NCBI RefSeq assembly: GCF_021869535.1
Contig: NW_026262690.1
Span: 91,326,001 to 91,390,000, forward strand
DNA from: Mytilus californianus
Taxonomy: Eukaryota
DNA: 64,000 nucleotides
Direction of reading: 5' to 3'
Shown: positions 4,462-54,173 of the stretch, one piece after another
How the letters are laid out: each line of letters begins with the position of its first letter
How positions within the stretch are numbered: the stretch's first letter is position 1
Notes under the pieces: model-generated
Database searches by the model: none
Told to the model about the DNA's origin: nothing
The model's input: the letters and a program-made list of their open reading frames with translations, nothing else
Made by a program: the position numbers and the translations under genes

Positions 4462-6880
4462 CGGGTCTCACTAATTAGCGACAAGAAGCTTCAAGAAGCG
4501 ACAAAAAAACTTTTTTTTTTATTAAGATTACTTATTCCAAATAAATATTAAAAAATATGCATTTTTTTTTTAATCTATGGGCAGAAATAAATTGATAATT
4601 TTTATTATTATATTGATAGATGAAGAAATTAAACATTTGTATGAATAAACGAATGGAGATAAATATAGAGTTGGCATAATGATCATGAGTACCAAACATG
4701 TACAAAATATACTGATTTATTAATCAAAGGTAAACCAGATGCGTTTCGGATTCTAGCAATTGCACAGAGCACATACTTTTGCAAGAATAAGACTGAAATG
4801 CTGACAATTTACTTTATACAAAACATAAAAGTTGAATGGCTTCAGTCAGCTTGTTTATAGAGCAAAGGAAATGCACACGCTATAAAATGGAAATAAAAAC
4901 AAAGATTTTTCAACTTTCCTTTGAAGAATTTATTGAAACAAAAACATGAAATATTATTTCCATTCTAACAGTACAATTCATTGTTCTTGATAGGAACAAC
5001 ATTAGATGTGGCTTCACCCTAAGATAATAACAGTACACACAATGTGAAACATCTGAGATTAACGAGGCGCGTGTCCCTTGTTTTATTGCTACAATAACAT
5101 CCAATTAACACCTTCAACTTTGTACACGCGTCAGACTATACAATTACACGCGCCAGAATATACAATCATTGTAAATAGTGAACATCTGTTGAAAACTCAA
5201 AATTGTCATTACTTTCCTTAATCTTCAATCAACATTAAACTATGCATTAACATGATAAATATCATTAAATTAGGAAATACACAAAATAAAATGATGAAAA
5301 ATATTCACATTTTAATTATGTTTTCCTTTTGTTTGATTTCAGTTCTTTGTATTTCACAATTTGTGTCAGAGTATTTTCTGGACAATGATGTACAAATAAT
5401 GCATTTTGCAAGTTTATTATATAATTTGTACAAAGAGAGTTTTAAAAACAAATTATAAGATAAATATATTATTGTTCTAAAACACAAGTAAAATTAATAT
5501 CATAATACGACAGGGTAAACGTAATACTTGCTGTAATACATAATAAATAATAAAATATCACAAATAAATGTAGCAATTAGATCTATGTTTCAAAAACTTG
5601 TGATGCTTTATTACTATAAAAATTCGTAAGGGTTCCGCGGAACCTAGTGTCTCGCCTACTTCTGCTGTTTATCACAGGCTCAACAAAAATGAGGAAAAAA
5701 ATTAATAAAAATATTCCTCTCTATACTATCTTTTGATTGTAAGTAGCTTCTGTCCAAGTTTGGTAAAAATCCAGGATAGTTTATGAATCTAATAAATGTT
5801 TTAAATAAAAACTTAAACTGTTATGTAATGTTAACTGGAAGAAAAACTAAGTCCATTTATAAGTAAAATACGGAAAATATGGAAAAATATTTTAACAAAA
5901 TTTCCTTTTAGATACTAGCTTTTAATCATAAACAAGCTTCTGTCCAAGTTTGGTACAAATCCAGGATAGTTTAAGAAAGTTGTTAAAATTTTAAAAACTT
6001 TAACCACAGAGTGAATGTAATGTTAACTGGCAGAAAAACTAAGTCCATTTATAAGTAAAATACGAAAAAAATGGGAATTTTTTTTTTACAAAATTTACTT
6101 CTGGATACTATCTTATGATCACAAACAAGCTTCTTTCCAAGTTTGGTACAAATCCAGGATAGTTTAAGAAAGTTATTAAAATTTCAAAAACTTTAACCAC
6201 AGAGTGAATGTAATGTTTCCTGGCAGAAAAACTAAGTCCATTTATAAGTAAAATACGGAAAAAATGGAATTTTTTTTTACAAAATTTACTTCTGGATACT
6301 ATCTTATGATCACAAACAAGCTTCTGTCCAAGTTTGGTACAAATCCAGGATAGTTTAAGAAAGTTATTAAAATTTCAAAAACTTTAACCACAGAGTGAAT
6401 GTAATGTTTCCTGGCAGAAAAACTAAGTCCATTTATAAGTAAAATATGGAAAAAGTGGAATTTTTTTTTTACAAAATTTACTTTTGAATATTATCTTATG
6501 ATCATAAACAAGCTTCTGTCCAAGTTTGGTAGAAATCCAGGATAGTTTAAGAAAGTTATTAAAATTTCAAAAACTTTAACCACAGAGTGAATATTTGTGG
6601 ACGCCGCCGACGACGACGACGACGCCGACGGAATGTAGGATCGCTATGTCTCGCTTTTTCGACAAAAGTCGAAGGCTCGACAAAAATGACTTTTTCTATC
6701 TATTTATTGATGGAATATTAACTTTCTTGTCGCTAAAATTGTTTTCTTTTGCATATTCTTTTAATATTTATTTGGAATAAATAATTTTAATAAAAAAAAA
6801 ATGTTTTCTTGTCGCTAAATACTATTATTCTTCTTGTCGCTCCTTGTCGCTTCTTGTCACTAAAATTCTTCTTGTCGCCG
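4462..6880. mobile_element. hAT-like non-autonomous element with GCGACAAG/CTTGTCGC subterminal repeats; hosts a HINE
   Basis: GATTGAC(C) duplicated at 4455-62 and 6881-88; repeated gcgacaag at the left end and cttgtcgc about 6 times at the right end. Confidence 0.65.
5618..6686. mobile_element. HINE, family A copy 1 (~191-bp internal repeat, 5 units)
   Basis: Palindrome GGTTCCGCGGAACC 5631-44, (CGA)n at about 6605-6625, hairpin TTCGACAAAAGTCGAA, A-run junctions. Confidence 0.85.
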
Positions 6881-7215
6881 GATTGACCTAAACAAATGCA
6901 CTTTTTATTTTGTTTTGCTAAATATAAGAAAATAGATTTTTATGCACTAAAAATTTATATTCCATTTGGGCTATAATGGATTATTATGACCCATGCCCAT
7001 CCCGAAAAAAAGCAAATCATGTCACATGGGACTGGGAAAAGAAGTCGCTTTTTTTTTCTGTCTATGAGTATGACAGCGAGGTTAAATGCAAAGCACACAT
7101 TTGAATAATCTTCAAAAATGAAAATAACTTGATATATCTTACTTGTTTACTTGGGCTCAAGTTGGACACTTGTTTTTATTGGCTATGACTCACGAGACCA
7201 GTGGTATATTTTATT

Positions 7216-7238
7216 GGGAATTCCCTACTTTCACTTTC
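7216..7238. promoter_or_regulatory. Adjacent NF-kB site (GGGAATTCCC) and IRF element (GAAAGTGAAAGT on - strand)
   Basis: Exact motifs read at 7216-7225 and 7227-7238, about 290 bp upstream of the COG2 ATG. Confidence 0.6.
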
Positions 7239-7510
7239 GTTAGGTTACCGATGAATTCCGAGTAGACTTGCATTTTACCCAACGAATATAGTAATAATTA
7301 TTTATCGTTTTGTATTAATAAGAAACAAGGATTTTTCTACTTTTAAAGACCATGTTTCTCTGAATATATTTTTTTAAAAGCAAAAATAGGTCATTTCTCA
7401 ACACCCATTGATTAATTGAGTTTTTGGTTTTTAGTCTGAGCAACAAATTTACATCCGGTTATGCCAAGAGTTATTCCCCGTCCTGCCAGCAGTGCAGACA
7501 AGTTGGGACT

Positions 7511-7591
7511 ATGACAGGAGACCCAAATAAAGCAGTCCCACTTCCTAGTGGTCCTGCATCTCTTTGCTTTGATAAAGATGTCTTCATGAAG
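7511..7591 (+). CDS. COG2: COG2 coding exon 1 (MTGDPNKAVPLPSGPASLCFDKDVFMK)
   Basis: ATG at 7511, donor gtaata at 7592; matches the COG2 N-terminus (LCFDKDEFMK in vertebrates). Confidence 0.93.
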
Positions 7592-10500
7592 GTAATAATG
7601 CTTCCTGTGTTCCTGAAATAAAACTCTATAAGCTCTTAACATGCGAATCATTTTAAAATCTCTAATATTGGTGGCAGACCTTACCCAGTAAAGGTTGAAA
7701 CAGCATAGGACAAAACTAAGGTTTGAAATGCCCTCTATGGTAGGTAACTAGAGTTCGAATGTCTCACGGGGTCCTTTTTTTCCCTACTAAATACTAAAAG
7801 TAAATGAGCCAGCCTGATAGACGACGTATTTACACTTGTATGCAAATTTGTTTGCCATTATTTTAAAACCATTAAAGTTCCCGCAAATTATTGCATCATA
7901 AATTTTAAACATTTGATGTCATAATATAAAAGTGAGTGTTGCATTACGTCAGAAGGTAATTTGAAGACAAATCAAGGGTCATTTAGAGACAAAATTCAGC
8001 TTAATACCAAATGTGTAAATACATTTATGAGTACCTTAAGGTAACGGGTGCATGTTGTACTTGTCATCACACATTTCAGTAATACAACATACAAATTTGC
8101 AGGAAATACTATGCTCCTATTGAATGTTGTCAGATACAAATTTGCAGTAAAATGTATGCTTTTTTAAGATGTTTTACAGAAATTCTTGAAAAAAGAAAAC
8201 TAGAAATAACTTTTCTGCCATGTTGTTGAAGCATGATAGTAGCACCTGTTGTAGACCAAAATCGACCTTTCTACCATAATTTCTGCTTTCAGGAGCATAA
8301 TACTGTAATATGAGACAGATGTTTAATACATGTCATGTCTATGAAAGAGGTTGAAGTCTGTATAAGTGATTAATTAAATACTGATTTTTTTTGTTAAGAA
8401 TAAAACTACAGTAGAATGTACTAAAGTCATCAATTATTTTTCACATTTTACAAATTATGACATGAAAAATGCAAAAATCAGTTATTTTTGAGATAATCTA
8501 TTGCCTTTCTAGACTGAGGGCTAAATAATGAATACCTCTTTGCCTCATTGAAAAAACAAATCAGAATTCCCTGCATAATTTCTGTTGAAAAAGTAACTGA
8601 AATATGAAAACATATCTGTAATTGGTCTTGTCATTAGGAATTTTATTTCTGACTTCATTTTCAATGTAAGCAAAGAAACACTATCTTCAGATAACGTTTT
8701 TTTCATAAAACAACAAAGATACAAAGTTGACTTATTAATAAACTTCTTGTATCTGATTCCTAATATGAGATCTGTTCGATGTGGATGTTGAAAAAAGTCT
8801 TTATCATTAATGATTTTTTTCTATCTATCTGCATACATCTTCACACATGCAAATTAAGGAAATGTCAAATGGAATGATTTAAATAGATTTAAACTCCTAC
8901 CACACTTTTCTATTTTTACACCCTCATCCTGATAAAAACGAACCTTTAAGCTGATGTTTTCATGCATACAATGATGTCTTGATCCCAAAATGTATAGATT
9001 TCTGATGTTTTTATGTGACTTTTGTGTGAAAAAAGATCCCCCGCGAAAAAAGACTGTTTCTCAGATACTATAAGCAACAGGTTAACTTTATTTGATATAT
9101 GTAAAGATTTTAAGGTGTACATGTCTGTCTGATGAGGTTCATCTTACCTTGACCTCATTTACTGGTACTTGGATCATTTACAAATTTATTTTTATGTTAT
9201 ACTAGCTGTGTAACCTTTTTCTTTCCGTAATTTGAACCCCTGTTTGTTTAAGACATTGTATTAATTATGAATGATATTTTGGAATTTGTTTTTTTCATTT
9301 CATTTCTAAATTTTCTAATAATTCATGGTAGGTTTCTTTGTTATTCTGTATAAATTCATTTTCAGAATGACATTTTTTTTTTTGGATGAAGCGAACCACA
9401 GGCCCTTTAAATACTTAGCTAATATTGTCCATTAGTAAATAAATAAAATCAATATTATGTGTACTTTGATATTCTGAATCAAACCATGTATTGAGATTTT
9501 GGATATTGGACCATAATAGGTGAAAGTCCGATTTCAAATTTTTCAGTTCTTTGACCACATTCATTCTGTCTGTGTCAAATATTTATTCACAATCCTAACT
9601 CAGGGCTGTATCAAGCTTGAATGTAGTGTCCATACTTGCCCAAACTGTTCAGGGTTTAACCTCTGCGGTTGTATCAAGCTGCGTCCAGCTGAGCATTTTA
9701 TTTTTCTTCTTTTTTCATATTTACTTCATTACTCAATAACCACATTAATTCAGATAACAAAAGTTTTTGTAATTTTTGTTGAAAATGTTTTATATCATAA
9801 GATGTGCTATATGTAAATATTATTTTTCTACTGTGATGAAGGAAGACACTATGTTTTAGTAGTGATTCTGATTCTTTCACATACAACCTTGTCTGGCCCA
9901 TAACTTTTTTTTTATCTTTTTGACAATGGCTTATGATATTTGGGGTGAAGGTGTATTATCTTTAGAAGATGTGTGTATATCATTATGAACATCATGTAAC
10001 CTTGACTTCAAGCTCAAAACACTTGATTTTTGTTACATTTAGCGACAGGAGCATCCTTTGACATACTGGTAGGCTTTTTATATTCGGTATATGGGCGCAA
10101 CATCTCAAAGACATTTGTGTTGTGTAATGGAAGATGGCCTCTAATCTTGAACTATGTATGACCTTCTAAGTCAAATAATTCATATCTATATATCCACCTT
10201 AAAACCATACATTTGAACATACTCTTGCTTGCCATGACAGACATTTTCCATTAAAAAAATGGTTTGCCCCTCATATGATTAGTCGTTGAATATCTAAAAA
10301 AAAAAGGTTCAGATCCATACCACTTAACATTTAACAATGTATACTCTGAATTGCCTTGGTAACCTTTTGAGTAAAACAATAAGTTTTGTACCTGGGGGAC
10401 ATACCTTGCTACCAGCATAAAATTAGTTGTTAAATCCCTTGAAAACTTTCCTATTCCCAAAATTGATCAAAGTAAGTAAACAACCCTCACAACCCCCATC

Positions 10501-13500
10501 AACACATTCCTTAAAAATATTAAAAGAATCATTTTCAAGCTTTAACAGACATGACAGAAGGGTTGCAAATTTTTTTATCAGCAGTCATCTAAAATGAGCC
10601 ACTTTTTATTTACAGGAAGGATTTGATGTAGATAATTTTGTGATGGAATGCAGGAGACGCGTACCACTAGAGACTCTAAGAGATGACCTGAACACTTACC
10701 TGAAAATTCTACGCAGTGCCATGATAGAACTTATTAATAAAGACTATGCTGATTTTGTCAATTTATCTACAAATTTGGTAAGGGTATTGCTAGATATAAT
10801 TGATTACTAGGCATTTCAAATATGAATTGATATACATTGTAATGGTTGGTTCTGAAGAAAACATGAAGCCTAAAAAATGAAAAATTAAATTTTTCAGATT
10901 GAATTGTAAGGAATATATCATCCCTTATATGAATACACCAACGAAGTTAGAAAAATCAAGAAAATAAATGAAGTCAGTTAGAAAGGGATAAATACACAAA
11001 AAAAAGTGTCAGTGAAAAATAAGCTGGCAAACAGTAAACTTTGAACAAACTTTAATGTCAAACAGTATATTTGACAGCATAGATTAGACACAAGTATTAC
11101 ATTAGTTTAACTAATTTTTAAAAGTTGGAATTCTTTTTTGTGTGTAATATGCCATTTATGATTTAATATGTACATTCTGGTATGGGTTTTTCTCATTGTT
11201 GAAGGCCTTACGGTTGCCTATAATTGCTTACATCCACTTCATTTGAACTTTGGTGGATAGTTGTCTCATTGGCAATAATACCACATCTCCTTATTTTTAT
11301 ATTGAAGTTACTAACATGTACATTCTCTTCAAAGCAAACATTGAATTAAATATGTACATTCTCTTCAAAGCAAACTTTGAATTAAATATGTACATTCTCT
11401 TCAAAGCAAACATTGAATTAAATATGTACATTCTCTTCAAAGCAAACATTGAATTAAATATGTACATTCTCTTCAAAGCAAACATTGAATTAAATATGTA
11501 CATTCTCTTCAAAGCAAACATTGCTTACTGTTCGGTGTGAGCCAAGGCTTCGTGTTGAAGACCGTACTGTGACCTATAATGGTTTACTTTTATAAATTTT
11601 GACTTGGATGGAGAGTTGTCTCATTGGCACTCATACCACATCTTCTTATATCTATTGAATTTAACATGTACATTCTCTTCAAAGCAAACATTGAATTAAA
11701 TATGTACATTCTCTTCAAAGCAAACATTGAATTTAACATGTACATTCTCTTCAAAGCAAACATTGAATTTAACATGTACATTCTCTTCAAAGCAAACATT
11801 GAATTTAACATGTACATTCTCTTCAAAGCAAACATTGACTCCTTTTTGCATCACATATAATCTCAAGCATAATTTCAGGTTGGAATGGACAAAGCTATCA
11901 CTAATCTAACAGTACCATTGGGAGAAATGAAAGACCAAGTTATGGTAAGTCTTTTATACTTCTTTCTTCGGTGTTAATCAAAGTTGATGAGATGAGAACA
12001 AATAAAACTTTTGAAAATTTTGTTTAAAGGTTGTCATAGTATATTGTTTGTAATATGCCATATGTATACACTGATGAGCCGTAAGGCTCAAAGTTAATAA
12101 AGAATTAGAATTAGAATAGTAATTATTTAATACAGAGAACTAGTGCAATTTGTTCAATATAAAGGGTCATGATCTATAGTTTAAGACTTGCAGTATAATT
12201 CATTAATAATCAACTGGTCTTGTGGTACTGTGCTCACCTCAAAAAAGGAGTTTTTTTGGATAGATCCCCAGTCAGGTCAAAGGACTAGAAAGTTGCTATC
12301 TGCCTATTCTCAGCTAAATATACAGTATTTGAAAGTTTAAAAAAGCAAAGACTGGTTGGCTCTAAATCTAGAATAATGTTTCTGAGTAGGGTGTCTTGTC
12401 TTCCTTGGGACTGTTACCTTGTGAACTAGCACCTTTAAAAAAATTCAGCTCAGCATGTCAGTCTTTTACAAAACAAGGTTCCTATTTATATTACACCAGA
12501 TATAGATTTAATTTGGCTTGGATGTTAAACAGCCATCCATTGTCATCATCAAAAAAAATAATTTCTTGTGATGATTTTTCAAAGTGAACTGTAATGATTT
12601 TGAATTATTTCAGTCTGAATTATCTCCCTCTATATTCTATCGATATGACACTTATATGATAGAGTTTCTAATCCGAGTATTGTTACTCACCATCATCAAC
12701 AATTATACGGCTTCACCACAAAACCAGTAGGACATTTGTTAACTGCATTGTCTTGTGTATATTATAGGTATTGATTAGCTTAAAAGTAATATGGGCTTGT
12801 TCAAATACTGTGGATTCATTTATTTTTGTGGGTACCAATTTTCGTGGATTATGGGAAAATTGTGTTTGAGTGGATATTTGATTTTATAAAAGTCTGCATA
12901 CAGACCTATAGAAAATTTGTACTTCATTGAACATTTGAATAGTAGTTCACCTGTACCCACTTAATCCAAGAAAATTGGTATATTCTATGAATAATAATGA
13001 ATCCACAATAAGCCTTTTACAGTTGAAACAAGGCTCAAATGTTCTTTTTTTTCTGGCTTCAAAATTCTATATTATTGATAGTTTCCATTGATGTTCCACA
13101 AGATTTTTCTTTTTACACTGTTTATGATGTTAGATGAAATATATCCCAAAAATTTGTTAAACCCTTGTCAATAACTGCAATAGTATTTTAACATCCATTT
13201 AAGTTTGTCATGAACATTGATAGATTTACTGTATTTTTTTTCATTGTAGACTGTGAAAGTAGCAATGGAAGAAGCTGTACATGCTGTTGAAGAAAAACTA
13301 AAACATAGGGAGCAAATTAGGGAGAAAAAGGTTAAAACAAGTTCATTTAAATTTTGATTGTTTTAAAAGCTCAAATTTTAGTCTACGCAAAAACACTGTC
13401 TGTCTCATGTTTCGAACTGAAATATAGTAATTTGTCGGGTAAACATCAATAATTTTATATTCCTATGAAGGCATGTTATCTAATCAATTTTAATAAAATT

Positions 13501-46625: not shown

Positions 46626-49517
46626 ACATTGTTTATATACAGGAATATTTGTTAAATTATAAAAGTTCCAGGATTATATTATAAATGTTCCAGGAATAGT
46701 TATCATGGTTATTAGATAATTAAAGTTCTAGGAATATTTATCATATGATCAAAGTTCAAGGAATATATACTTCAATATCCAAAATTATTGCTAGCTACAA
46801 ATGTATGGAAGTAAATTTTCTATAACAAAATATAGGCATTTTCATCTGAAATACAGGTAGATGTCATCCACAAGGTGAGGTGAGCAGTAATTAAGAAAAA
46901 AAATTTTATGAAGGTGGAAATAATATTATGTAATGTTTTTTCCCAAGAACTTCTATTATCCTTAGTTTTGTTCCAGGGGGAACAATTATTATGCGGAACA
47001 AATATATGTTCACACAAAAACGTGAATAAAATTCGGAAAAGCAAATATGATATGCAGCTTCTAATGACAACCACCAAATTGATGAAATTACAAAAGTAAG
47101 TATCGATAAATTACTCGTTTACGAACAAACTCCATCAGGTACTTTCCGGCGATGAAAAAAGACTGTTCCCGCTATATTTGTATATACCTTTTCTTTTTTT
47201 ACGTTTATTTCACTTAATTCTTCACTGACATTTACAAGATCAACGCGGACCGTTAGTGAATTAAACGAGAGTTCATATTGCCCAAAGTTGTACTCCGAGA
47301 TGATTAAAACCTGAGATTGTAATGACACACAAACAGTGTAATAGTAGTGTCAGACACATGCGCGTGAATCACAGGGGTTTGTTACAATTTCCCATTTCCT
47401 AACCCCGACTCCCACTTACCCTATCGTACTCCCATTTCCCAACCACCTTACTCCAAGACGAAAATCGGTCAATTTTCTTTCCAAGAATATCCCTATTTTT
47501 ATCCCCCTCTTCCCCCAGGTCCCGCCCCCCTCAATCCCATATTTCCTGACCACTGTCCACCACCTCAGAGATTGTATCGGAGTTGATAGATTTACCTTAA
47601 ACAAGGTAAGACAAGAGTAGTAGTGTGGTATAAAAATAGAAAACTGAATATTCAGTGCAAACAGTGAAAAAAAATTCAAATCCTATACCCGGCTGAGCGC
47701 CTGTGGTCTAAGGTAAGACTGAAAATCCTTACACTGCATTTAAGTGACAAGTGCTATTGTAAACAAATACTGAACTGTCATAGCTTCGATCGAAAATATC
47801 AATATAATCAATAAATGAAACATACTGAAGCGATTCAGGCTGTAATCGAACTGCTCAAGTTATCGCGAATACCACACACCATGATTGTTTGTTGTTTGCG
47901 TTACGTGACGTCCAGTGGCAAATTGTTCATGCATATTCAGAACAAGGACAAATAAATAATAAATTCAATAAGGAGGCTGTGCAAAGTGGTTTGGTCGCCA
48001 GCAGAAAATTTTGCAAAGGTTAAATATATCTATTATATACTCCACATAGCTGCTTTACTGAGATATTGACGAACTAGTACCCATATTATGATCATAGATT
48101 GCTTTTTAACGTCCAGAGGCAATTCATTACAGGTTAATGTGATGTCAGCATGAACCCCGTTTTTTTACAAGACCGACACGTTGAGCCGCATTTTATATTG
48201 ATCAATAGTATGATGATCTTCGACCTTTGTTTTTTTTTATAGTCTCATTTGCAATTATAGCACATCTCCTTATTTTCATATACACGTAGTTCACAAGGCA
48301 ACAGTCCGCCTGAAAAAATGTCAACCTGCCCGGACCAGTTCAGACTCACAGTCGACCAATCTTTGCTACCGGGAGATCACCCAGTATAAGTATCAACTTT
48401 CTATTGAAAGAAATGTACATTAGAAAAAACATAAATGACTTTGTTTATGAATCTGATTGAGTTTTCATAAACTTAAGGGTATGATTTACATTTGGTCAAA
48501 ATAACTAATATTAAGTAAAGGTATGTATGCCAACTCTCTGTTTGATGAAAGGACTAAGTTTTATAAAATTCTTTAATGCAGATTTTTGTAGTTTCACCGG
48601 AATGCTTATGCAGAATTTGAAGAAAAAATATTCCGTGACTTTTTATGGTGAGATAATTAATTTTACAGATTTGTAGTATTGTAAGCAAGACCATTATCTT
48701 AGTCCTAAAGTGTAGGAGTTGCTAGGTTTACAGTATTTCTGAACGGTCATGGGATGTCGTTGTCTTCTTGTCATTTATAGAAAAGAGAAAGGTTTTGTTT
48801 CCAAAACGGTCTCTTGCTATTTTCTAAAGACCATACTATAATACCAGATTGGTTTCCCTTCAAACAGTTCCGTACACGATATTCATAGAGAATAAACAGT
48901 AATATTATTCGAGGCTTTTCTTTCTGCATCCTGGTTAATTTAGACTGATCCTGATCGTGTTCTTGCTTTTTCTGGGCTCCCATTCAATTAAACATTAATC
49001 GTTGTTATTTGAACTATCTATCTTCGCTCTAATCTCTACGGACAGACGCGAATTGTCTGTTGATATCAAATGATAACAAGAAATAAAATTGAAAATTAAA
49101 ACGGGGGATATGTCAAAGAGACAGCAACACGACCAAAGATCAGACAACAGCTCAAGGCCACCAAAGGGTCTTCAACACTGCGAGAAAATGCCGAACCCGG
49201 AGGTGGGCTTTAACTGGCCCCTAAACAAAATGTATACTAGTTCAGAGAAAATGGACGTCACACTAAACTCCGAAACATATGAACCAAAATTAAAAAAAAA
49301 CACATAAGACTAACAAAAGCCAGAGGTTCCTGACTTGAGACAGGCGCAAAAATGCTGCGTGATTAGACTTGTTTATCGAAGAAAACATGGCAAAATAGAA
49401 AAGAAAGAATGAGCATCACAATCCAAAAAGCTAAAGCGATGATAGGCGTGGTACTAATTCCAAATGATCTCAAACAGAGGCTTTAAGTGCCAACCTTTTT
49501 ATGTTCGATTATCATTT

Positions 49518-52500
49518 GAGGGGGTGACACAGGAGTGTTCATTTCCCAAATCCTTCTTTTTTGGGGAAATTTTTCCCACTTCCCAAATTTATAGACCATT
49601 CTTCCCACTTCCCACTTTTTTCCAATTCTCCCAAATCCCAGATTTTGGGTTTCCGTAATGCCCTATTTGGAGCCATCCAGAGCTGTCTTTTTTCTTGTTT
49701 GTTCTTCAGTATGTACAGAACTTATGAATAAACACATATTTGCCTTACCTATACTTTAATGGTCCAGATTCTTACTACAACCTCAAGAACAATGTCATTT
49801 AAGGCTTTTGTGAACAAAATAATAGGAAAAAAAATACCAAAGGTGATAAAGCACTCCTAGATGACTCTGAAAATAAATGCCTTCAACGCTTAAAGCAACT
49901 CCCGTTTAGTTAACAGAACACAAAACTTAACTGAACACAAAACCAACAGAACACAAAACCCAAAGCAGGGAATCTTTATATCAGACACAAAGTGTGATAC
50001 AATTGATGAACAATTGTTAATTGATGAACAAGAATTACTGGTGTACAAGCATGACCAAAAATGATTCCAATTGGTACGTTGATATTACTGTCTGTTGAAG
50101 TATGGAATTTAATCAACAATAAAAACATAGAAAATGCCACCTAAATATATGCAAAACCATGGAACAAACACCTTTTAGATCGGACGAAGTTTGTGAATTC
50201 TCCAGGAAACCCCTCTGTTTGTAACACTATAATTACTGTATGACAATTAGCATAGACCATATGGTGAAGGAACTATCTCTGAATGCGAAGCTAAATTTGA
50301 ATTCAAATGAAACACTGTTAGTTTTTCTAAAATTCTTTACGAGGAACTTATTGACTGTTATTGGAAAACCCCTGTACAAAAAAAAGCAGTAAATTCAAAC
50401 ACGATGAAGACAACAACACAGATATGGAGATATAACAATCTTCCGGGACAAGATAATATATAAAGTGATCTGAAATTGCTAATAATAAATTTAAAAAAGC
50501 ATTATTTGATGATCATTGATTATTTTTATAAGCAAAATAGTCTTTTAAATAACTTGGTGTCCGTTTTTGTCGTGTCCCGGAAGATTGTGTTATCCCCATA
50601 ACTGCGTTGATGTATTCATCCTGTTCGTCCCACTGCTGTTTTTGTCTTGGGGGTTTTCAATAAGTTCCTCGTAAAGAAGTTCAGATATACTTATTTGATT
50701 TGATTTAACATTTATCTGTGAATTCAGATATAGTTCCTTCACCGCATGGTCTATGCTAATTTTCATAACGTCAATAGTTTTACAAATGAAGGGGTTTCCT
50801 GGAGAATTTACAAACATATCCCCACGTACATCGTCCGATCCAACAGGTGTTTATATGATTAAGTCGCATATCCTTCTTTCTTTTTTATTGTTAACAGACA
50901 GAAGTAACAATTTTCCAGTTGCAAACATTATAAGTGTGGCTTGTTCACCAGTTTATTTTCATCAATCAACAATTTTTGAAAGTCAATTGTATCAACACTT
51001 TGTGTCTCTTTCTGATATGCATACAATGGAAGTGTTCCTGCATTGAAATTGGTGTTCTGTTGTCTAATAGAGAGTTTTTTTACGCTTTGTAGATATTTCG
51101 TCCTATAATCATCCAAGAGTGTTCTATCAGCTTGAGTGATTTTAATTTCTTTGATTTTTGGCATTTTCACAACTGCCTTAAAAGGCACCAATCCTTCAGG
51201 GTGTTCTTAGTAAGAATCTGGATTAGTGAAGTATAGTTATGGCAAAGATGTGGTTTTTCCATAAGTTCTTTACACACTGAAGAGAACGAAACAGCAAATT
51301 CAAGTGTCTGTGGAGTAACGACTCTGTCTCGCATCAAGCAAAAAAAGTGTTCAACCATCTTTGTTGATATAACTTCATGCTTAATTTCAGGAACAATAAC
51401 GGGATAGTCTTCAATTAAGAACTGTAAGCAACCAAGAAGCATTTTAATGTTATCCTGAAGCACTCTCGAGACACAGCATTGTGGTCCCTAAACAAGCTTA
51501 TATGATGCCTTAACGTGTTGTGATGCTTTAGAAAAGTAATCATCAACATTCTTCAATTTATTCAAACTTTCAGTCAATGTACATCCCACTTCTATATGCA
51601 CCTTAAAACAGTCATATAAATCACCAACTGCAGTTAGAAACTTAACCATACCCTTTGTTGGTGGATTTGGTACATTCGTGTGACGCACAGTTCATAATTC
51701 TATTGAGCTGTATTTGTGTTCTGTTGTAAATCAATTTTACATGTTCGTTGTTATTCTGTGGTTTACATGTTGAAACGGACTATCATGTTATTTATTTATG
51801 TATTTCTCTGTCCTGAATGTTCTAGTATTTATTTGTACTTCATTCCTGTCACGTAATGTTGTCATTTTAGCGGTATTTTTAACATTGCTATATAAGCGGG
51901 AGGTTTGGCTAGCCATAAAACCACATTCAACTCACCATTTTTTTCTTGAAATGTCCTGTACCAAGTCAGGAATATGGCAATTGTTATCACATAGTCCGTT
52001 TTTATGTATGTTGGCGTTTGTTTTTGTAGCAGTTCAGTGTTTCTGTTGTTCCGTTTTGTTTCCTCTTATAGTCGATGTGTTTCCCTCAGTTTTGGTTTGT
52101 GACCCGGATTTGTTTCAGTTAAATAGATTTATGACTATTGAACAGCGGTATACTACTATTGCCTTTATTTACCATAAATAAAACTGATGATTCACCAGAA
52201 CCACAAATATACAATGTTTTACCTTCTGCAGCAATACCTGATGGTTGGGTAAAGGATGATGCCAAACAGGGTCCATATATCCGATCAGTTTGACCAGATC
52301 CTGCAACCATAGAAATTTCCCTTTTTTCATCAATACATTTTACTTGCCTGGACTTTGTATCAATAAAATGTATGCGGCCTTGTCGAAGTGAAATGGAATG
52401 TGGACTACATGTGTCTGATTTGATAACAATGACATCGGTTTCAAAAGTCTGCAAGTTGATGCTAGATATCCCTCCATTTCTACCAATGTCAACGTATACC

Positions 52501-52750
52501 AGAATATCCTCGTGTAACATCATGCTGCTGACTATTACTGGTGTATCACGTTTCAGAGTGATTTCCCTGTGTAAAGTTCCCCCTAACTTATTTGGTCCAA
52601 CAGTAAAAGTAACTAAAAAATAGCCTCTTTTTTTCCCTTTTTTGTGGTTTTTTTCCCACATCCCACTTCCTTCTTTTTTTTCCTTCTTTTTTCCCAGATC
52701 CCACTTTTTTTACCCCCTATATCCCACATCCCAAAAGTATGTCACCCCTC
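49518..52750 (-). mobile_element. Internally deleted TIR DNA transposon with 6-bp TSD, carrying NHL-repeat / P-like transposase remnants
   Basis: TIR GAGGGG(G)TGACA / TGTCACCCCTC; TSD TCATTT at 49512-17 and 52751-56; TCCCA-motif arrays under both ends; decayed ORF pieces at 52661-52171, 51662-50590 (-). Confidence 0.8.
51663..52170 (+). mobile_element. 3' fragment of a PLE-like retroelement inserted in the transposon ORF
   Basis: Removing it restores ...VLFMV|PTKGMVKF...; contains the cctgtaccaagtcagga block shared with other PLE 3' ends. Confidence 0.7.
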
Positions 52751-54173
52751 TCATTTATCCAGAAGGCAACTAAATCATAAAAACAAAAGTTTCCTCATGA
52801 ATCACTTTGCGATAAGGTAAACAAGAGGCTCATGAGAGCCTGATATCGCTCACCTATAATTTCAGTTTCAGGCATTTGACTTATTTGTAGATCTTACTTT
52901 GCTGAACAATTTTGTCATTTACACTTTCTCTCTTTCTATAATAATATTTAAGATAATACATAACCCAAAACTATAAAATTTCCCAAAATATAACTATTTC
53001 TGGACAGTAACCCAACAATAAGTTGTCCTACTGGTTTGAAGATTACTTGACAGGTAGATCTAAACTTGTTTAACACTTTCACCTATGTTAGTTTTGCTCT
53101 TACTGCTTTAGTTTTTGAGACGAAAGCCAAAAATTTCATTTGACCCCTATGTTCTATTTTTAGAAACTGCCGCCATAATTTTGAATGGATCGAATCCCCG
53201 AATACAATCTATATACTAGATACCCTGAGGAACATTCAATTAAAGTTTTTAAATATTTTGCCCAGTAGTTTCAGAGAAGAGGATTTTTTAAAATGTAATT
53301 AGACTTTCACAAAAAGTGTTAAAAAAAAACGTTTTAAAGGCAATAACTCCTTAATTGACTATTTTGATCATGTTGACTTATTTGTAGATCTTGCTTAGCT
53401 GAACATTTATTGTCATTTATACTTTCTCTCTATCTATTATAACATTAAAGAAAATAACCAAAAACAGTAAAATTTAATAAAAATAAACTATTTCCAACAG
53501 TAACCCAACAATGGGTAGTCAAACTTGTCTGAAACAGATAGATCATGACCCATTTATCACTTTAACTCCCTTTCACTTTTGCTCTAACTGCTGCAGTTTT
53601 TTTTAGATATAGCCATTGTATATTGTTGATGGATCAAAACTTCGGATACAATTCACAAACTAGATACCCTAAGGAACATTCAGTTAAAGTTTGGAAGCAT
53701 TTGGCCAAGTAGTTTCAGAGAAGAAGATTTTTGAAAAAGTAATAGAATTGCACGAAAAAATGTGAAATATAAACTATTTTGATCATTTGACTTATTTGTA
53801 GATCCTACTTAGCTGAACATTTTTGCCATTTACACTTTTTCTCTATCTATAATAATATTAAAGATAATAACCAAAAACAGTAAAATTTCAGAAAAATAAA
53901 CTATTTCGGACAGTAACCCTACAATGTGTAGTCCAATTGGTCTGAAAATGTAATTCCTTGTCTCTTTTGCTCTAAGTGCTATAGTTTTTGAGATAAAAGC
54001 CAAAATTGCATTCGACCCCATGTTCTATTTTTAGCCATGGCGGCCATGTTTGTTAATGGATTAAAACTTTGGATACAATTTATAAACCAGTTACCCTAAG
54101 GAACATTCAGTTAAAGTTTAGAAGTATTAGGCCTAGTAGTTTCAGAGGAGAAGATTTTTAAATGTTAGCAAAC

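Follow-up and report, generated by a model that had tools for sequence, protein, structure and literature searches.

In the P element the GTP-binding domain, which is the only insertion domain of its kind known to bind GTP, lies between β5 and α4 of the RNase H fold of the transposase, and integration produces target-site duplications (TSDs) of 8 bp (PMC7776569). Kolobok elements follow a 5'-RR...YY-3' rule at their termini, give TTAA or 3-5-bp TSDs and nearly all carry a zinc finger that lies after the C/DxxH motif and before the catalytic Glu (PMC9587614), and Dada elements have no terminal inverted repeats (TIRs), insert only into small RNA genes (snRNA or tRNA) and give TSDs of 6-7 bp (PMC3706591). 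Here we describe a transposon relic in a 64,000-nucleotide stretch of the Mytilus californianus genome (assembly GCF_021869535.1, contig NW_026262690.1, positions 91,326,001 to 91,390,000 of the forward strand), which is AT-rich (GC ~32%) and is referred to as a whole as the window. With a probability of about 0.9, positions 49518-52750 of the window are a dead, non-autonomous and internally deleted derivative of a P-like cut-and-paste DNA transposon whose transposase bears a β-propeller. A function of this relic in its own right is unlikely.

The ends of the element are made up of the following features:

49512-49517, no strand: left TSD copy, TCATTT, identical to the 6-mer at 52751-52756
49518-49529, plus strand: TIR of the gene-downstream end, GAGGGGGTGACA (siblings: GAGGGGGGTGACACA at both ends)
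49540-49660, plus strand: subterminal array of seven TCCCA repeats, none inverted (direct-repeat families D1-D3 at both ends, and counts)
52600-52735, plus strand: subterminal array of six TCCCA repeats at the gene-upstream end, oriented as the left array (direct-repeat search and counts)
52740-52750, minus strand: TIR of the gene-upstream end, reverse complement GAGGGGTGACA (read from the sequence and the siblings)
52751-52756, no strand: right TSD copy, TCATTT, an exact match of the left copy

An earlier note on this DNA, made from the sequence alone, had reported an exact TCATTT duplication, an 11-12-bp TIR and TCCCA arrays lying in the same orientation at both ends. All three are present. 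The two TIRs pair at 11 of 12 nucleotides in the form GAG...CTC, the difference being a single G absent from the G-run. On the plus strand the outermost 150 bp hold seven TCCCA motifs at the left end and six at the right, the 2.9-kb interior has two more, and TGGGA is absent from this strand.

Using the window element as a query against the 1.65-Gb assembly that contains the window, a whole-genome DNA search returned about 20 related loci with identities of 83-94%. Nine of these sibling copies have two ends, and in eight of them the GAG...CTC termini are bordered by an exact or near-exact 6-bp TSD that differs in sequence from copy to copy (TTAGAT, ATAACT, AGCCTT, AATTAT, AAACTT and ATAAAT, for example). 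This count over other copies, a comparison suggested by the earlier note, extends the duplication beyond the single locus where it had been read. Because there are about 20 loci and eight of the nine two-ended copies have a 6-bp TSD, the feature is more than a product of chance.

The interior holds remnants of a gene on the minus strand, a nested repeat and an imperfect palindrome. The remnants are given here relative to P0027, the 1,156-aa reference member of the protein family considered below:

49703-50456, plus strand: left arm of the palindrome, which repeats in inverted form coding and untranslated 3' sequence of the transposase gene (I1-I11, 71-90% complementary)
50567-51283, minus strand: right arm of the palindrome, in the original orientation of the gene (inverted-repeat and genome DNA searches)
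50949-51233, minus strand: remnant equivalent to about P0027 978-1073, the C-terminal region including GTLPLYAY (tblastn, E 7e-14; open reading frame)
51254-51655, minus strand: remnant equivalent to about P0027 828-970, the post-propeller helical bundle and the third-catalytic-residue motif TKMVEHFF at 51364-51326 (tblastn)
51664-52179, no strand: nested, unrelated, high-copy repeat of 516 bp that interrupts the reading frame (copies elsewhere, siblings, contig joints)
52180-52532, minus strand: remnant equivalent to about P0027 703-835, the last ~2.5 NHL blades (tblastn; P0029 698-764, 40% identity, E 1e-13; weak NHL match)

Three peptide strings on which the earlier note had relied were recovered on the minus strand where it had placed them: MVAGSG...TLYI (52310-52206) in an open reading frame (ORF) of 180 aa (52661-52119), TKMVEHFFCLMRD (51364-51326) in an ORF of 98 aa (51463-51167), and GTLPLYAY in an ORF of 87 aa. 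What remains of the gene in the window is its C-terminal third, because the match is collinear with P0027 703-1073 only; about 700 codons, among them those for both catalytic Asp, are missing. The remnant belongs to a transposase family, as the earlier note had inferred. No usable match came from Pfam searches with the ORF fragments of the window itself. Sibling L033 contains an intact ORF of 277 aa that unites the fragments of the window in a single frame, in the order NHL-like blade, helical stretch, STKMVENFF and YFTNPDSYY, and aligns to P0027 756-1002 (E 5e-27). Pfam has no match for this ORF, and a 168-aa ORF from a sibling gives a weak NHL match only (E 0.038).

Dozens of copies of the 516-bp repeat, with 92-94% identity, occur elsewhere in the genome. 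It is a nested insertion, since three siblings (L017, L019 and L033) are continuous across its site and contigs of all four public runs pass from 51663 to 52180 through 8 other letters. The 8 letters at sites that lack the repeat suggest that it makes an 8-bp target duplication. The repeat also has the highest contig word depth within 48900-53400. The palindrome is 1.6 kb long (49703-51283, centre near 50511), and the inverted duplication behind it predates the spread of the non-autonomous family, because each sibling matches itself in reverse (~68%).

The family to which these remnants belong was searched for by profile among 1.84 billion representative proteins. At E ≤ 1e-3 there were 1,448 matches, of which 248 had E ≤ 1e-30; they stem from mussels, corals, a priapulid and marine metagenomes, and full-length members have 1,100-1,400 aa. 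The named entries come from Mytilus trossulus, M. coruscus, the corals Oculina patagonica and Desmophyllum pertusum, and Priapulus caudatus, and all of them are filed as 'uncharacterized' or 'hypothetical'. One member of 1,167 aa (P0181) appears at NCBI under a Sedimenticola sp. metagenome-assembled genome as a hypothetical protein, and probably represents host DNA binned into a bacterial genome. Within M. californianus, protein searches located distant relatives (26-38% identity) that lie within much larger genes and whose upstream ORFs encode a conserved Asp (RDG..LKP), a Cys-rich stretch, a second Asp (HDCEQKNK) and a DxxH motif (PDAVHVGK). Stop-free frames of 675-910 aa are present at three of these relatives (C110:59950439, C99:9121508 and C165:32550494), with 800-910 aa at the first two; these relatives may be near-intact or domesticated. 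Proteins of this genome share 81-89% identity with their M. coruscus counterparts, which marks the host as a mussel.

In the aligned members, following P0027 numbering, D219 is conserved in 35 of 35 sequences, D386 in 37 of 38 and E938 in 25 of 25, and H421 of the DxxH motif is invariant or nearly so across the family alignment. The spacing is 167 aa between the two Asp and 552 aa between the second Asp and the Glu. E938 lies in the motif that the earlier note had likened to the third-catalytic-residue motif of P/THAP9-type transposases; the motif is found in VENFF and VENLH forms, with an E-x-x-H spacing in half of the family, and the VENFF form may resemble the Glu motif of P/THAP9. The consensus of the family alignment (A2) has a conserved Cys cluster between the first and second Asp, presumably a zinc-binding module. 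Among 41 members, Pfam NHL (PF01436) was detected in 17 (best E 1e-9) and SAP in 13, and PF21787 reached sub-threshold scores in five (best 22.2 bits against a gathering cut-off of 24.6). PF21788, PF21789 and PF12596 were not found in these 41 members, nor was a THAP domain at E ≤ 0.1.

An AlphaFold model of P0027 was built with a 41-sequence alignment (pLDDT 82.8 and pTM 0.79 for the full-length protein). Residues ~491-827 form a six-bladed propeller in this model, best matched by the solved NHL domains of TRIM71, Lin41, NHLRC2, teneurin and PknD. Against TRIM71, Lin41 and NHLRC2 the VIA-align Z values are 27-28 with a root-mean-square deviation of 2.5-3.0. The Foldseek matches reach an E of 1e-10. 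Thus, the repeat motif recognized in the earlier note corresponds, in full-length members, to a true six-bladed NHL propeller. In agreement with the model, profile A2 compared with PDB sequences matched NHL (E 1e-28) and, inside the propeller region, SAP (E 1e-3); these were its only matches, P not being found.

Propellers dominated the Foldseek and VIA-align matches when the 1,156-aa model was used whole, and the catalytic part was therefore folded separately. The first 426 ordered residues, modelled alone, reached a pLDDT of 92.3, and their only clear match in the PDB is the Drosophila P element transposase 6p5a (Foldseek E 1.3e-7 and 2.6e-7, the next hits having E > 0.03). VIA-align superimposes 288 residues on chain 6p5a_A with a Z of 12.5, followed by retroviral integrases with a Z of 7.4. 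The nearest ESM Atlas clusters, aligned over 305-320 residues with TM scores of 0.57-0.62, carry the labels PF21787 (TNP-like RNase H N), PF21788 (TNP-like GBD), PF12017 (Tnp_P_element) and THAP. By sequence, a phmmer search of the PDB with an N-terminal ORF of 355 aa returned nothing.

The order of the secondary structure elements in the model fits an RNase H core: D219 is in the first long strand, D386 ends the strand that follows the Cys-rich module, the DxxH helix spans 419-432, and then come the propeller, a helical bundle and E938 within a helix. D219, D386 and E938 would be close in space and would be the residues that carry out catalysis. The propeller lies between the DxxH motif and the Glu in all full-length relatives, a predicted position equivalent to that of the P insertion domain. 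The N-terminal model also contains helices aligning to the first part of P's insertion domain, up to residue 425 of the model and 430 of the chain. The RNase H-fold transposase with a propeller in its insertion domain, as conceived in the earlier note, is what the models predict, with a P-like helix-turn-helix (HTH) region, an RNase H fold and six NHL blades that follow the second Asp and the DxxH helix and precede the invariant Glu. A captured host gene devoid of such a fold, which the note had considered as the contrary outcome, is not what was predicted for the full-length relatives, where 6p5a is the best match.

Intact relatives show that the group is mobile. Eight contigs of a single ENA assembly (ERZ26692694) encode P0180, a protein of 1,159 aa with 47% identity to P0027, without any difference in its sequence, and six of these loci (L074-L079) share 6.35 kb at 99.7-99.95% identity, with the similarity ending sharply on both sides. 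At L074 the element occupies 5366-11713 and its transposase is one uninterrupted ORF of 1,161 aa. The ends are GAGGGGGGGCAAGGG...CTC, with the inverted complement at the far end, and five of the six copies are flanked by perfect 6-bp TSDs (GGTAAA, AAAACA, TACAAA, ACCTTC and TTGTGA). Small ORFs in the ~2.6 kb upstream of the transposase ORF have no Pfam match. To judge from these near-identical sequences, the 6.35-kb element is probably active at present in a marine eukaryote. In M. trossulus, the uncharacterized LOC134695518 is located inside a 10.8-kb element with the TIR GAGGGGGGGCGAGA and the TSD TATATT. This element (L073, CM071702.1) falls within the span of a large Reeler and Laminin G gene model on the same strand. 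In the M. californianus genome, one relative has an end that reads as the reverse complement of GAGGGGGGTAATAGA. No position could be assigned to the 5' end of the C115 relative (L053), and around P0043 and P0034 generic searches for TIRs and TSDs yielded no convincing candidates.

The TIRs of the intact relatives are 15 bp long and start with GAGGGGGG. Every lineage has GA...TC termini and all lineages examined have 6-bp TSDs, so that the combination of GAG..CTC ends and a 6-bp TSD noted for the window holds over many copies and in three further lineages, among them the 6.35-kb and M. trossulus elements. Subterminal repeat pairs occur near both ends and are always in gene-sense orientation, the window family having TGGGA, M. 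trossulus CGGGA and the intact element CGTGA. The same-orientation repeats are considered a hallmark of the group, because the direct orientation is seen in all three lineages in which both ends were read.

The likeness to P/THAP9 comprises a helical DNA-binding region followed by a split RNase H fold, for which 6P5A is the only clear PDB match, a DxxH motif after the second Asp and a large insertion domain between β5/DxxH and the catalytic-Glu helix. The family differs from P in that its 41 examined members lack both THAP and the Pfam GTP-binding domain and in that NHL and SAP occupy the insertion domain; further differences are the Cys-rich module between the two Asp, the 6-bp TSD, the 15-bp TIRs starting with GAGGGGGG, the direct subterminal repeats and a sequence similarity below the Pfam TNP-like cut-off. 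RAG1/RAG2 and Transib/ProtoRAG resemble the family as DDE recombinases that work with a six-bladed propeller, although the RAG2 propeller is a separate protein (PMC4411706), whereas the NHL propeller is fused inside the transposase. In addition, the RNase H part is far nearer to P than to RAG1/Transib (Z 12.5 against about 5), and the duplicated target measures 6 bp and not 5 bp. The RAG2 propeller is of the Kelch type.

No description of a P-like transposase with an inserted propeller or NHL domain was found in the literature searched. The family is apparently a widespread and undescribed lineage of P-like transposons, as judged from the literature and the protein names rather than from Repbase or Dfam. 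We tentatively propose, at odds slightly short of even, that it constitutes a separate and unnamed lineage at the superfamily level, sister to P and Kolobok, defined by GAGGGGGG termini, 6-bp TSDs, same-orientation YGKGA pairs and an NHL plus SAP insertion in the RNase H domain where P binds GTP, with at least one family that is probably still active in a marine invertebrate.

The least improbable alternative is that the element belongs to a divergent lineage of Kolobok, the sister group of P. The family and Kolobok are both in the C/DxxH group and abundant in molluscs, the 5'-GA...TC-3' termini fit the RR...YY rule, a zinc finger follows the first Asp in some Kolobok lineages, as presumably in this family, KolobokP makes non-TTAA TSDs and is rich in bivalves (PMC9587614), and Kolobok has no solved structure with which to compare the models. 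We nevertheless regard Kolobok membership as improbable and reject it on four grounds. The TSDs are varied 6-mers and not TTAA; the alignment A2 consensus shows no conserved Cys/His cluster between DxxH and Glu, where the Kolobok zinc finger lies; the signature strings of the family are absent from the supplementary files of PMC9587614, including its Kolobok alignment; and the Atlas neighbours are labelled THAP, TNP-like and GBD. Moreover, no propeller has been reported for Kolobok.

Membership in Dada, as a divergent branch, is less probable still. The earlier note stated that no superfamily it could name fits a 6-bp TSD, and in this it was wrong, given that Dada produces 6-7 bp, though the other defining features of Dada are not seen here. 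Besides the TSD, Dada shares with the family a DxxH motif and a very large transposase, and the E-x-x-H spacing of half of the family is that of Dada LESFH (PMC3706591). The absence of TIRs and the restriction to small RNA genes in Dada contrast with 15-bp TIRs and varied targets in the family. The catalytic spacings of Dada are shorter (68 aa between the Asp residues and 176 aa from Asp to Glu, against 167 and 552 aa), its first-Asp, second-Asp and DxxH motifs look different, the signature strings are absent from the Dada alignment, and the fold together with the weak profile matches points to TNP-like proteins. On TIRs, targets, spacing and motifs, Dada membership was rejected.

Bivalves have many NHL-repeat genes. 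A Pack-type capture, in which an unrelated transposon had taken up part of a host TRIM-NHL-type gene as the NHL piece and its adjacency to the transposase-like motif were accidental, would agree with this abundance and with the weak Pfam NHL match of the sibling fragment, but this explanation is scarcely credible and is refuted in practice, inasmuch as NHL blades, helical bundle and Glu motif are encoded in one continuous ORF in L033, the alignment is collinear with full-length proteins of several phyla in which the propeller has a constant place, and a single ORF covers the whole protein in intact mobile elements. Chimeric gene models are likewise excluded as an explanation of the full-length relatives, because the 1,161-aa ORF of L074 is uninterrupted.

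The derivation of the window element from a propeller-bearing P-like transposon has to be weighed against several observations that speak to the contrary. None of the 41 family members tested has a TNP-like Pfam domain above the gathering score, and a scan of the M. californianus genome with PF21787 gave 53 places, none of which is a known family locus. No copy of the window family with the N-terminal half was recovered, and for this reason the link to the full-length proteins depends on alignments of 29-40% identity, which are significant and collinear. The evidence for the fold consists of predicted models, and closest to P, which here means among solved structures and Pfam-labelled Atlas clusters, is limited in meaning because Kolobok, Dada and MuDR are without a solved structure. 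Finally, TSDs are absent from one of the nine two-ended siblings (L007) and from one of the six intact copies (L078). As to the 53 places, they are ordinary TNP-like genes (P/THAP9/Kolobok-type) above the Pfam cut-off, for example at C165:50973932 and C121:88886076. Some TNP-like genes of this genome carry open frames of 750-890 aa.

Taken as a derivative of such a transposon, the window copy would go back to an autonomous form encoding one large transposase of about 1,150-1,400 aa. From its N-terminus, this protein would consist of a disordered acidic segment, a P-element-like helical (HTH) DNA-binding region and an RNase H core with the Cys-rich module between the first and second Asp and then the DxxH helix, followed by a very large insertion domain made up of helices and a six-bladed NHL propeller carrying a SAP motif, and by the catalytic-Glu helix (VENFF/VENLH), a conserved C-terminal region and an acidic tail. 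The enzyme would recognize the 15-bp TIR beginning with GAGGGGGG together with arrays of YGKGA half-site pairs, oriented gene-sense at both ends, excise the element and reinsert it with a 6-bp stagger; here we infer both the binding of the subterminal repeats and a role of the propeller. The copy ancestral to the window family would have lost the first ~700 codons, including those for both catalytic Asp, and gained the inverted duplication of its 3' part. It would then have spread in trans to about 20 loci and decayed by stop codons, frameshifts and the nested repeat.

In DDE transposases, as known from Hermes, RAG1, Tn5 and P, the insertion domain shapes the cutting of DNA ends and the choice of target, and a P-like enzyme with an NHL propeller and SAP at the insertion position would be a new solution in a well-studied class of enzymes. 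It would also constitute a fused parallel to the pairing of RAG1 with the RAG2 propeller. With its six near-identical copies, the intact 6.35-kb element could be tested directly as a candidate active transposon and might serve as a new gene-transfer tool. Annotation can rely on GAGGGGGG...CCCCCCTC ends, a 6-bp TSD and direct subterminal repeats as hallmarks, which permit the recognition and masking of elements that now appear as 'uncharacterized protein' in mussel, coral and priapulid genomes.

Other high-copy repeats flank the element at 49050-49350 and 52826-53400, and loose contig ends at 49280 continue into an A-rich tail, as in a short interspersed nuclear element or other retroposed repeat. 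No empty-site joint for the window insertion was present among the contigs of the public runs, which cannot show absence. A few contigs (runs X8 and X9, organism B) join 49623 to 52706 and thereby omit 3,082 bp, a weak joint with only 22 letters on one side, and in organism B the contig depth is higher over the terminal regions than over the interior. These joints and the terminal depth hint at short derivatives resembling miniature inverted-repeat transposable elements, with a higher copy number in organism B.

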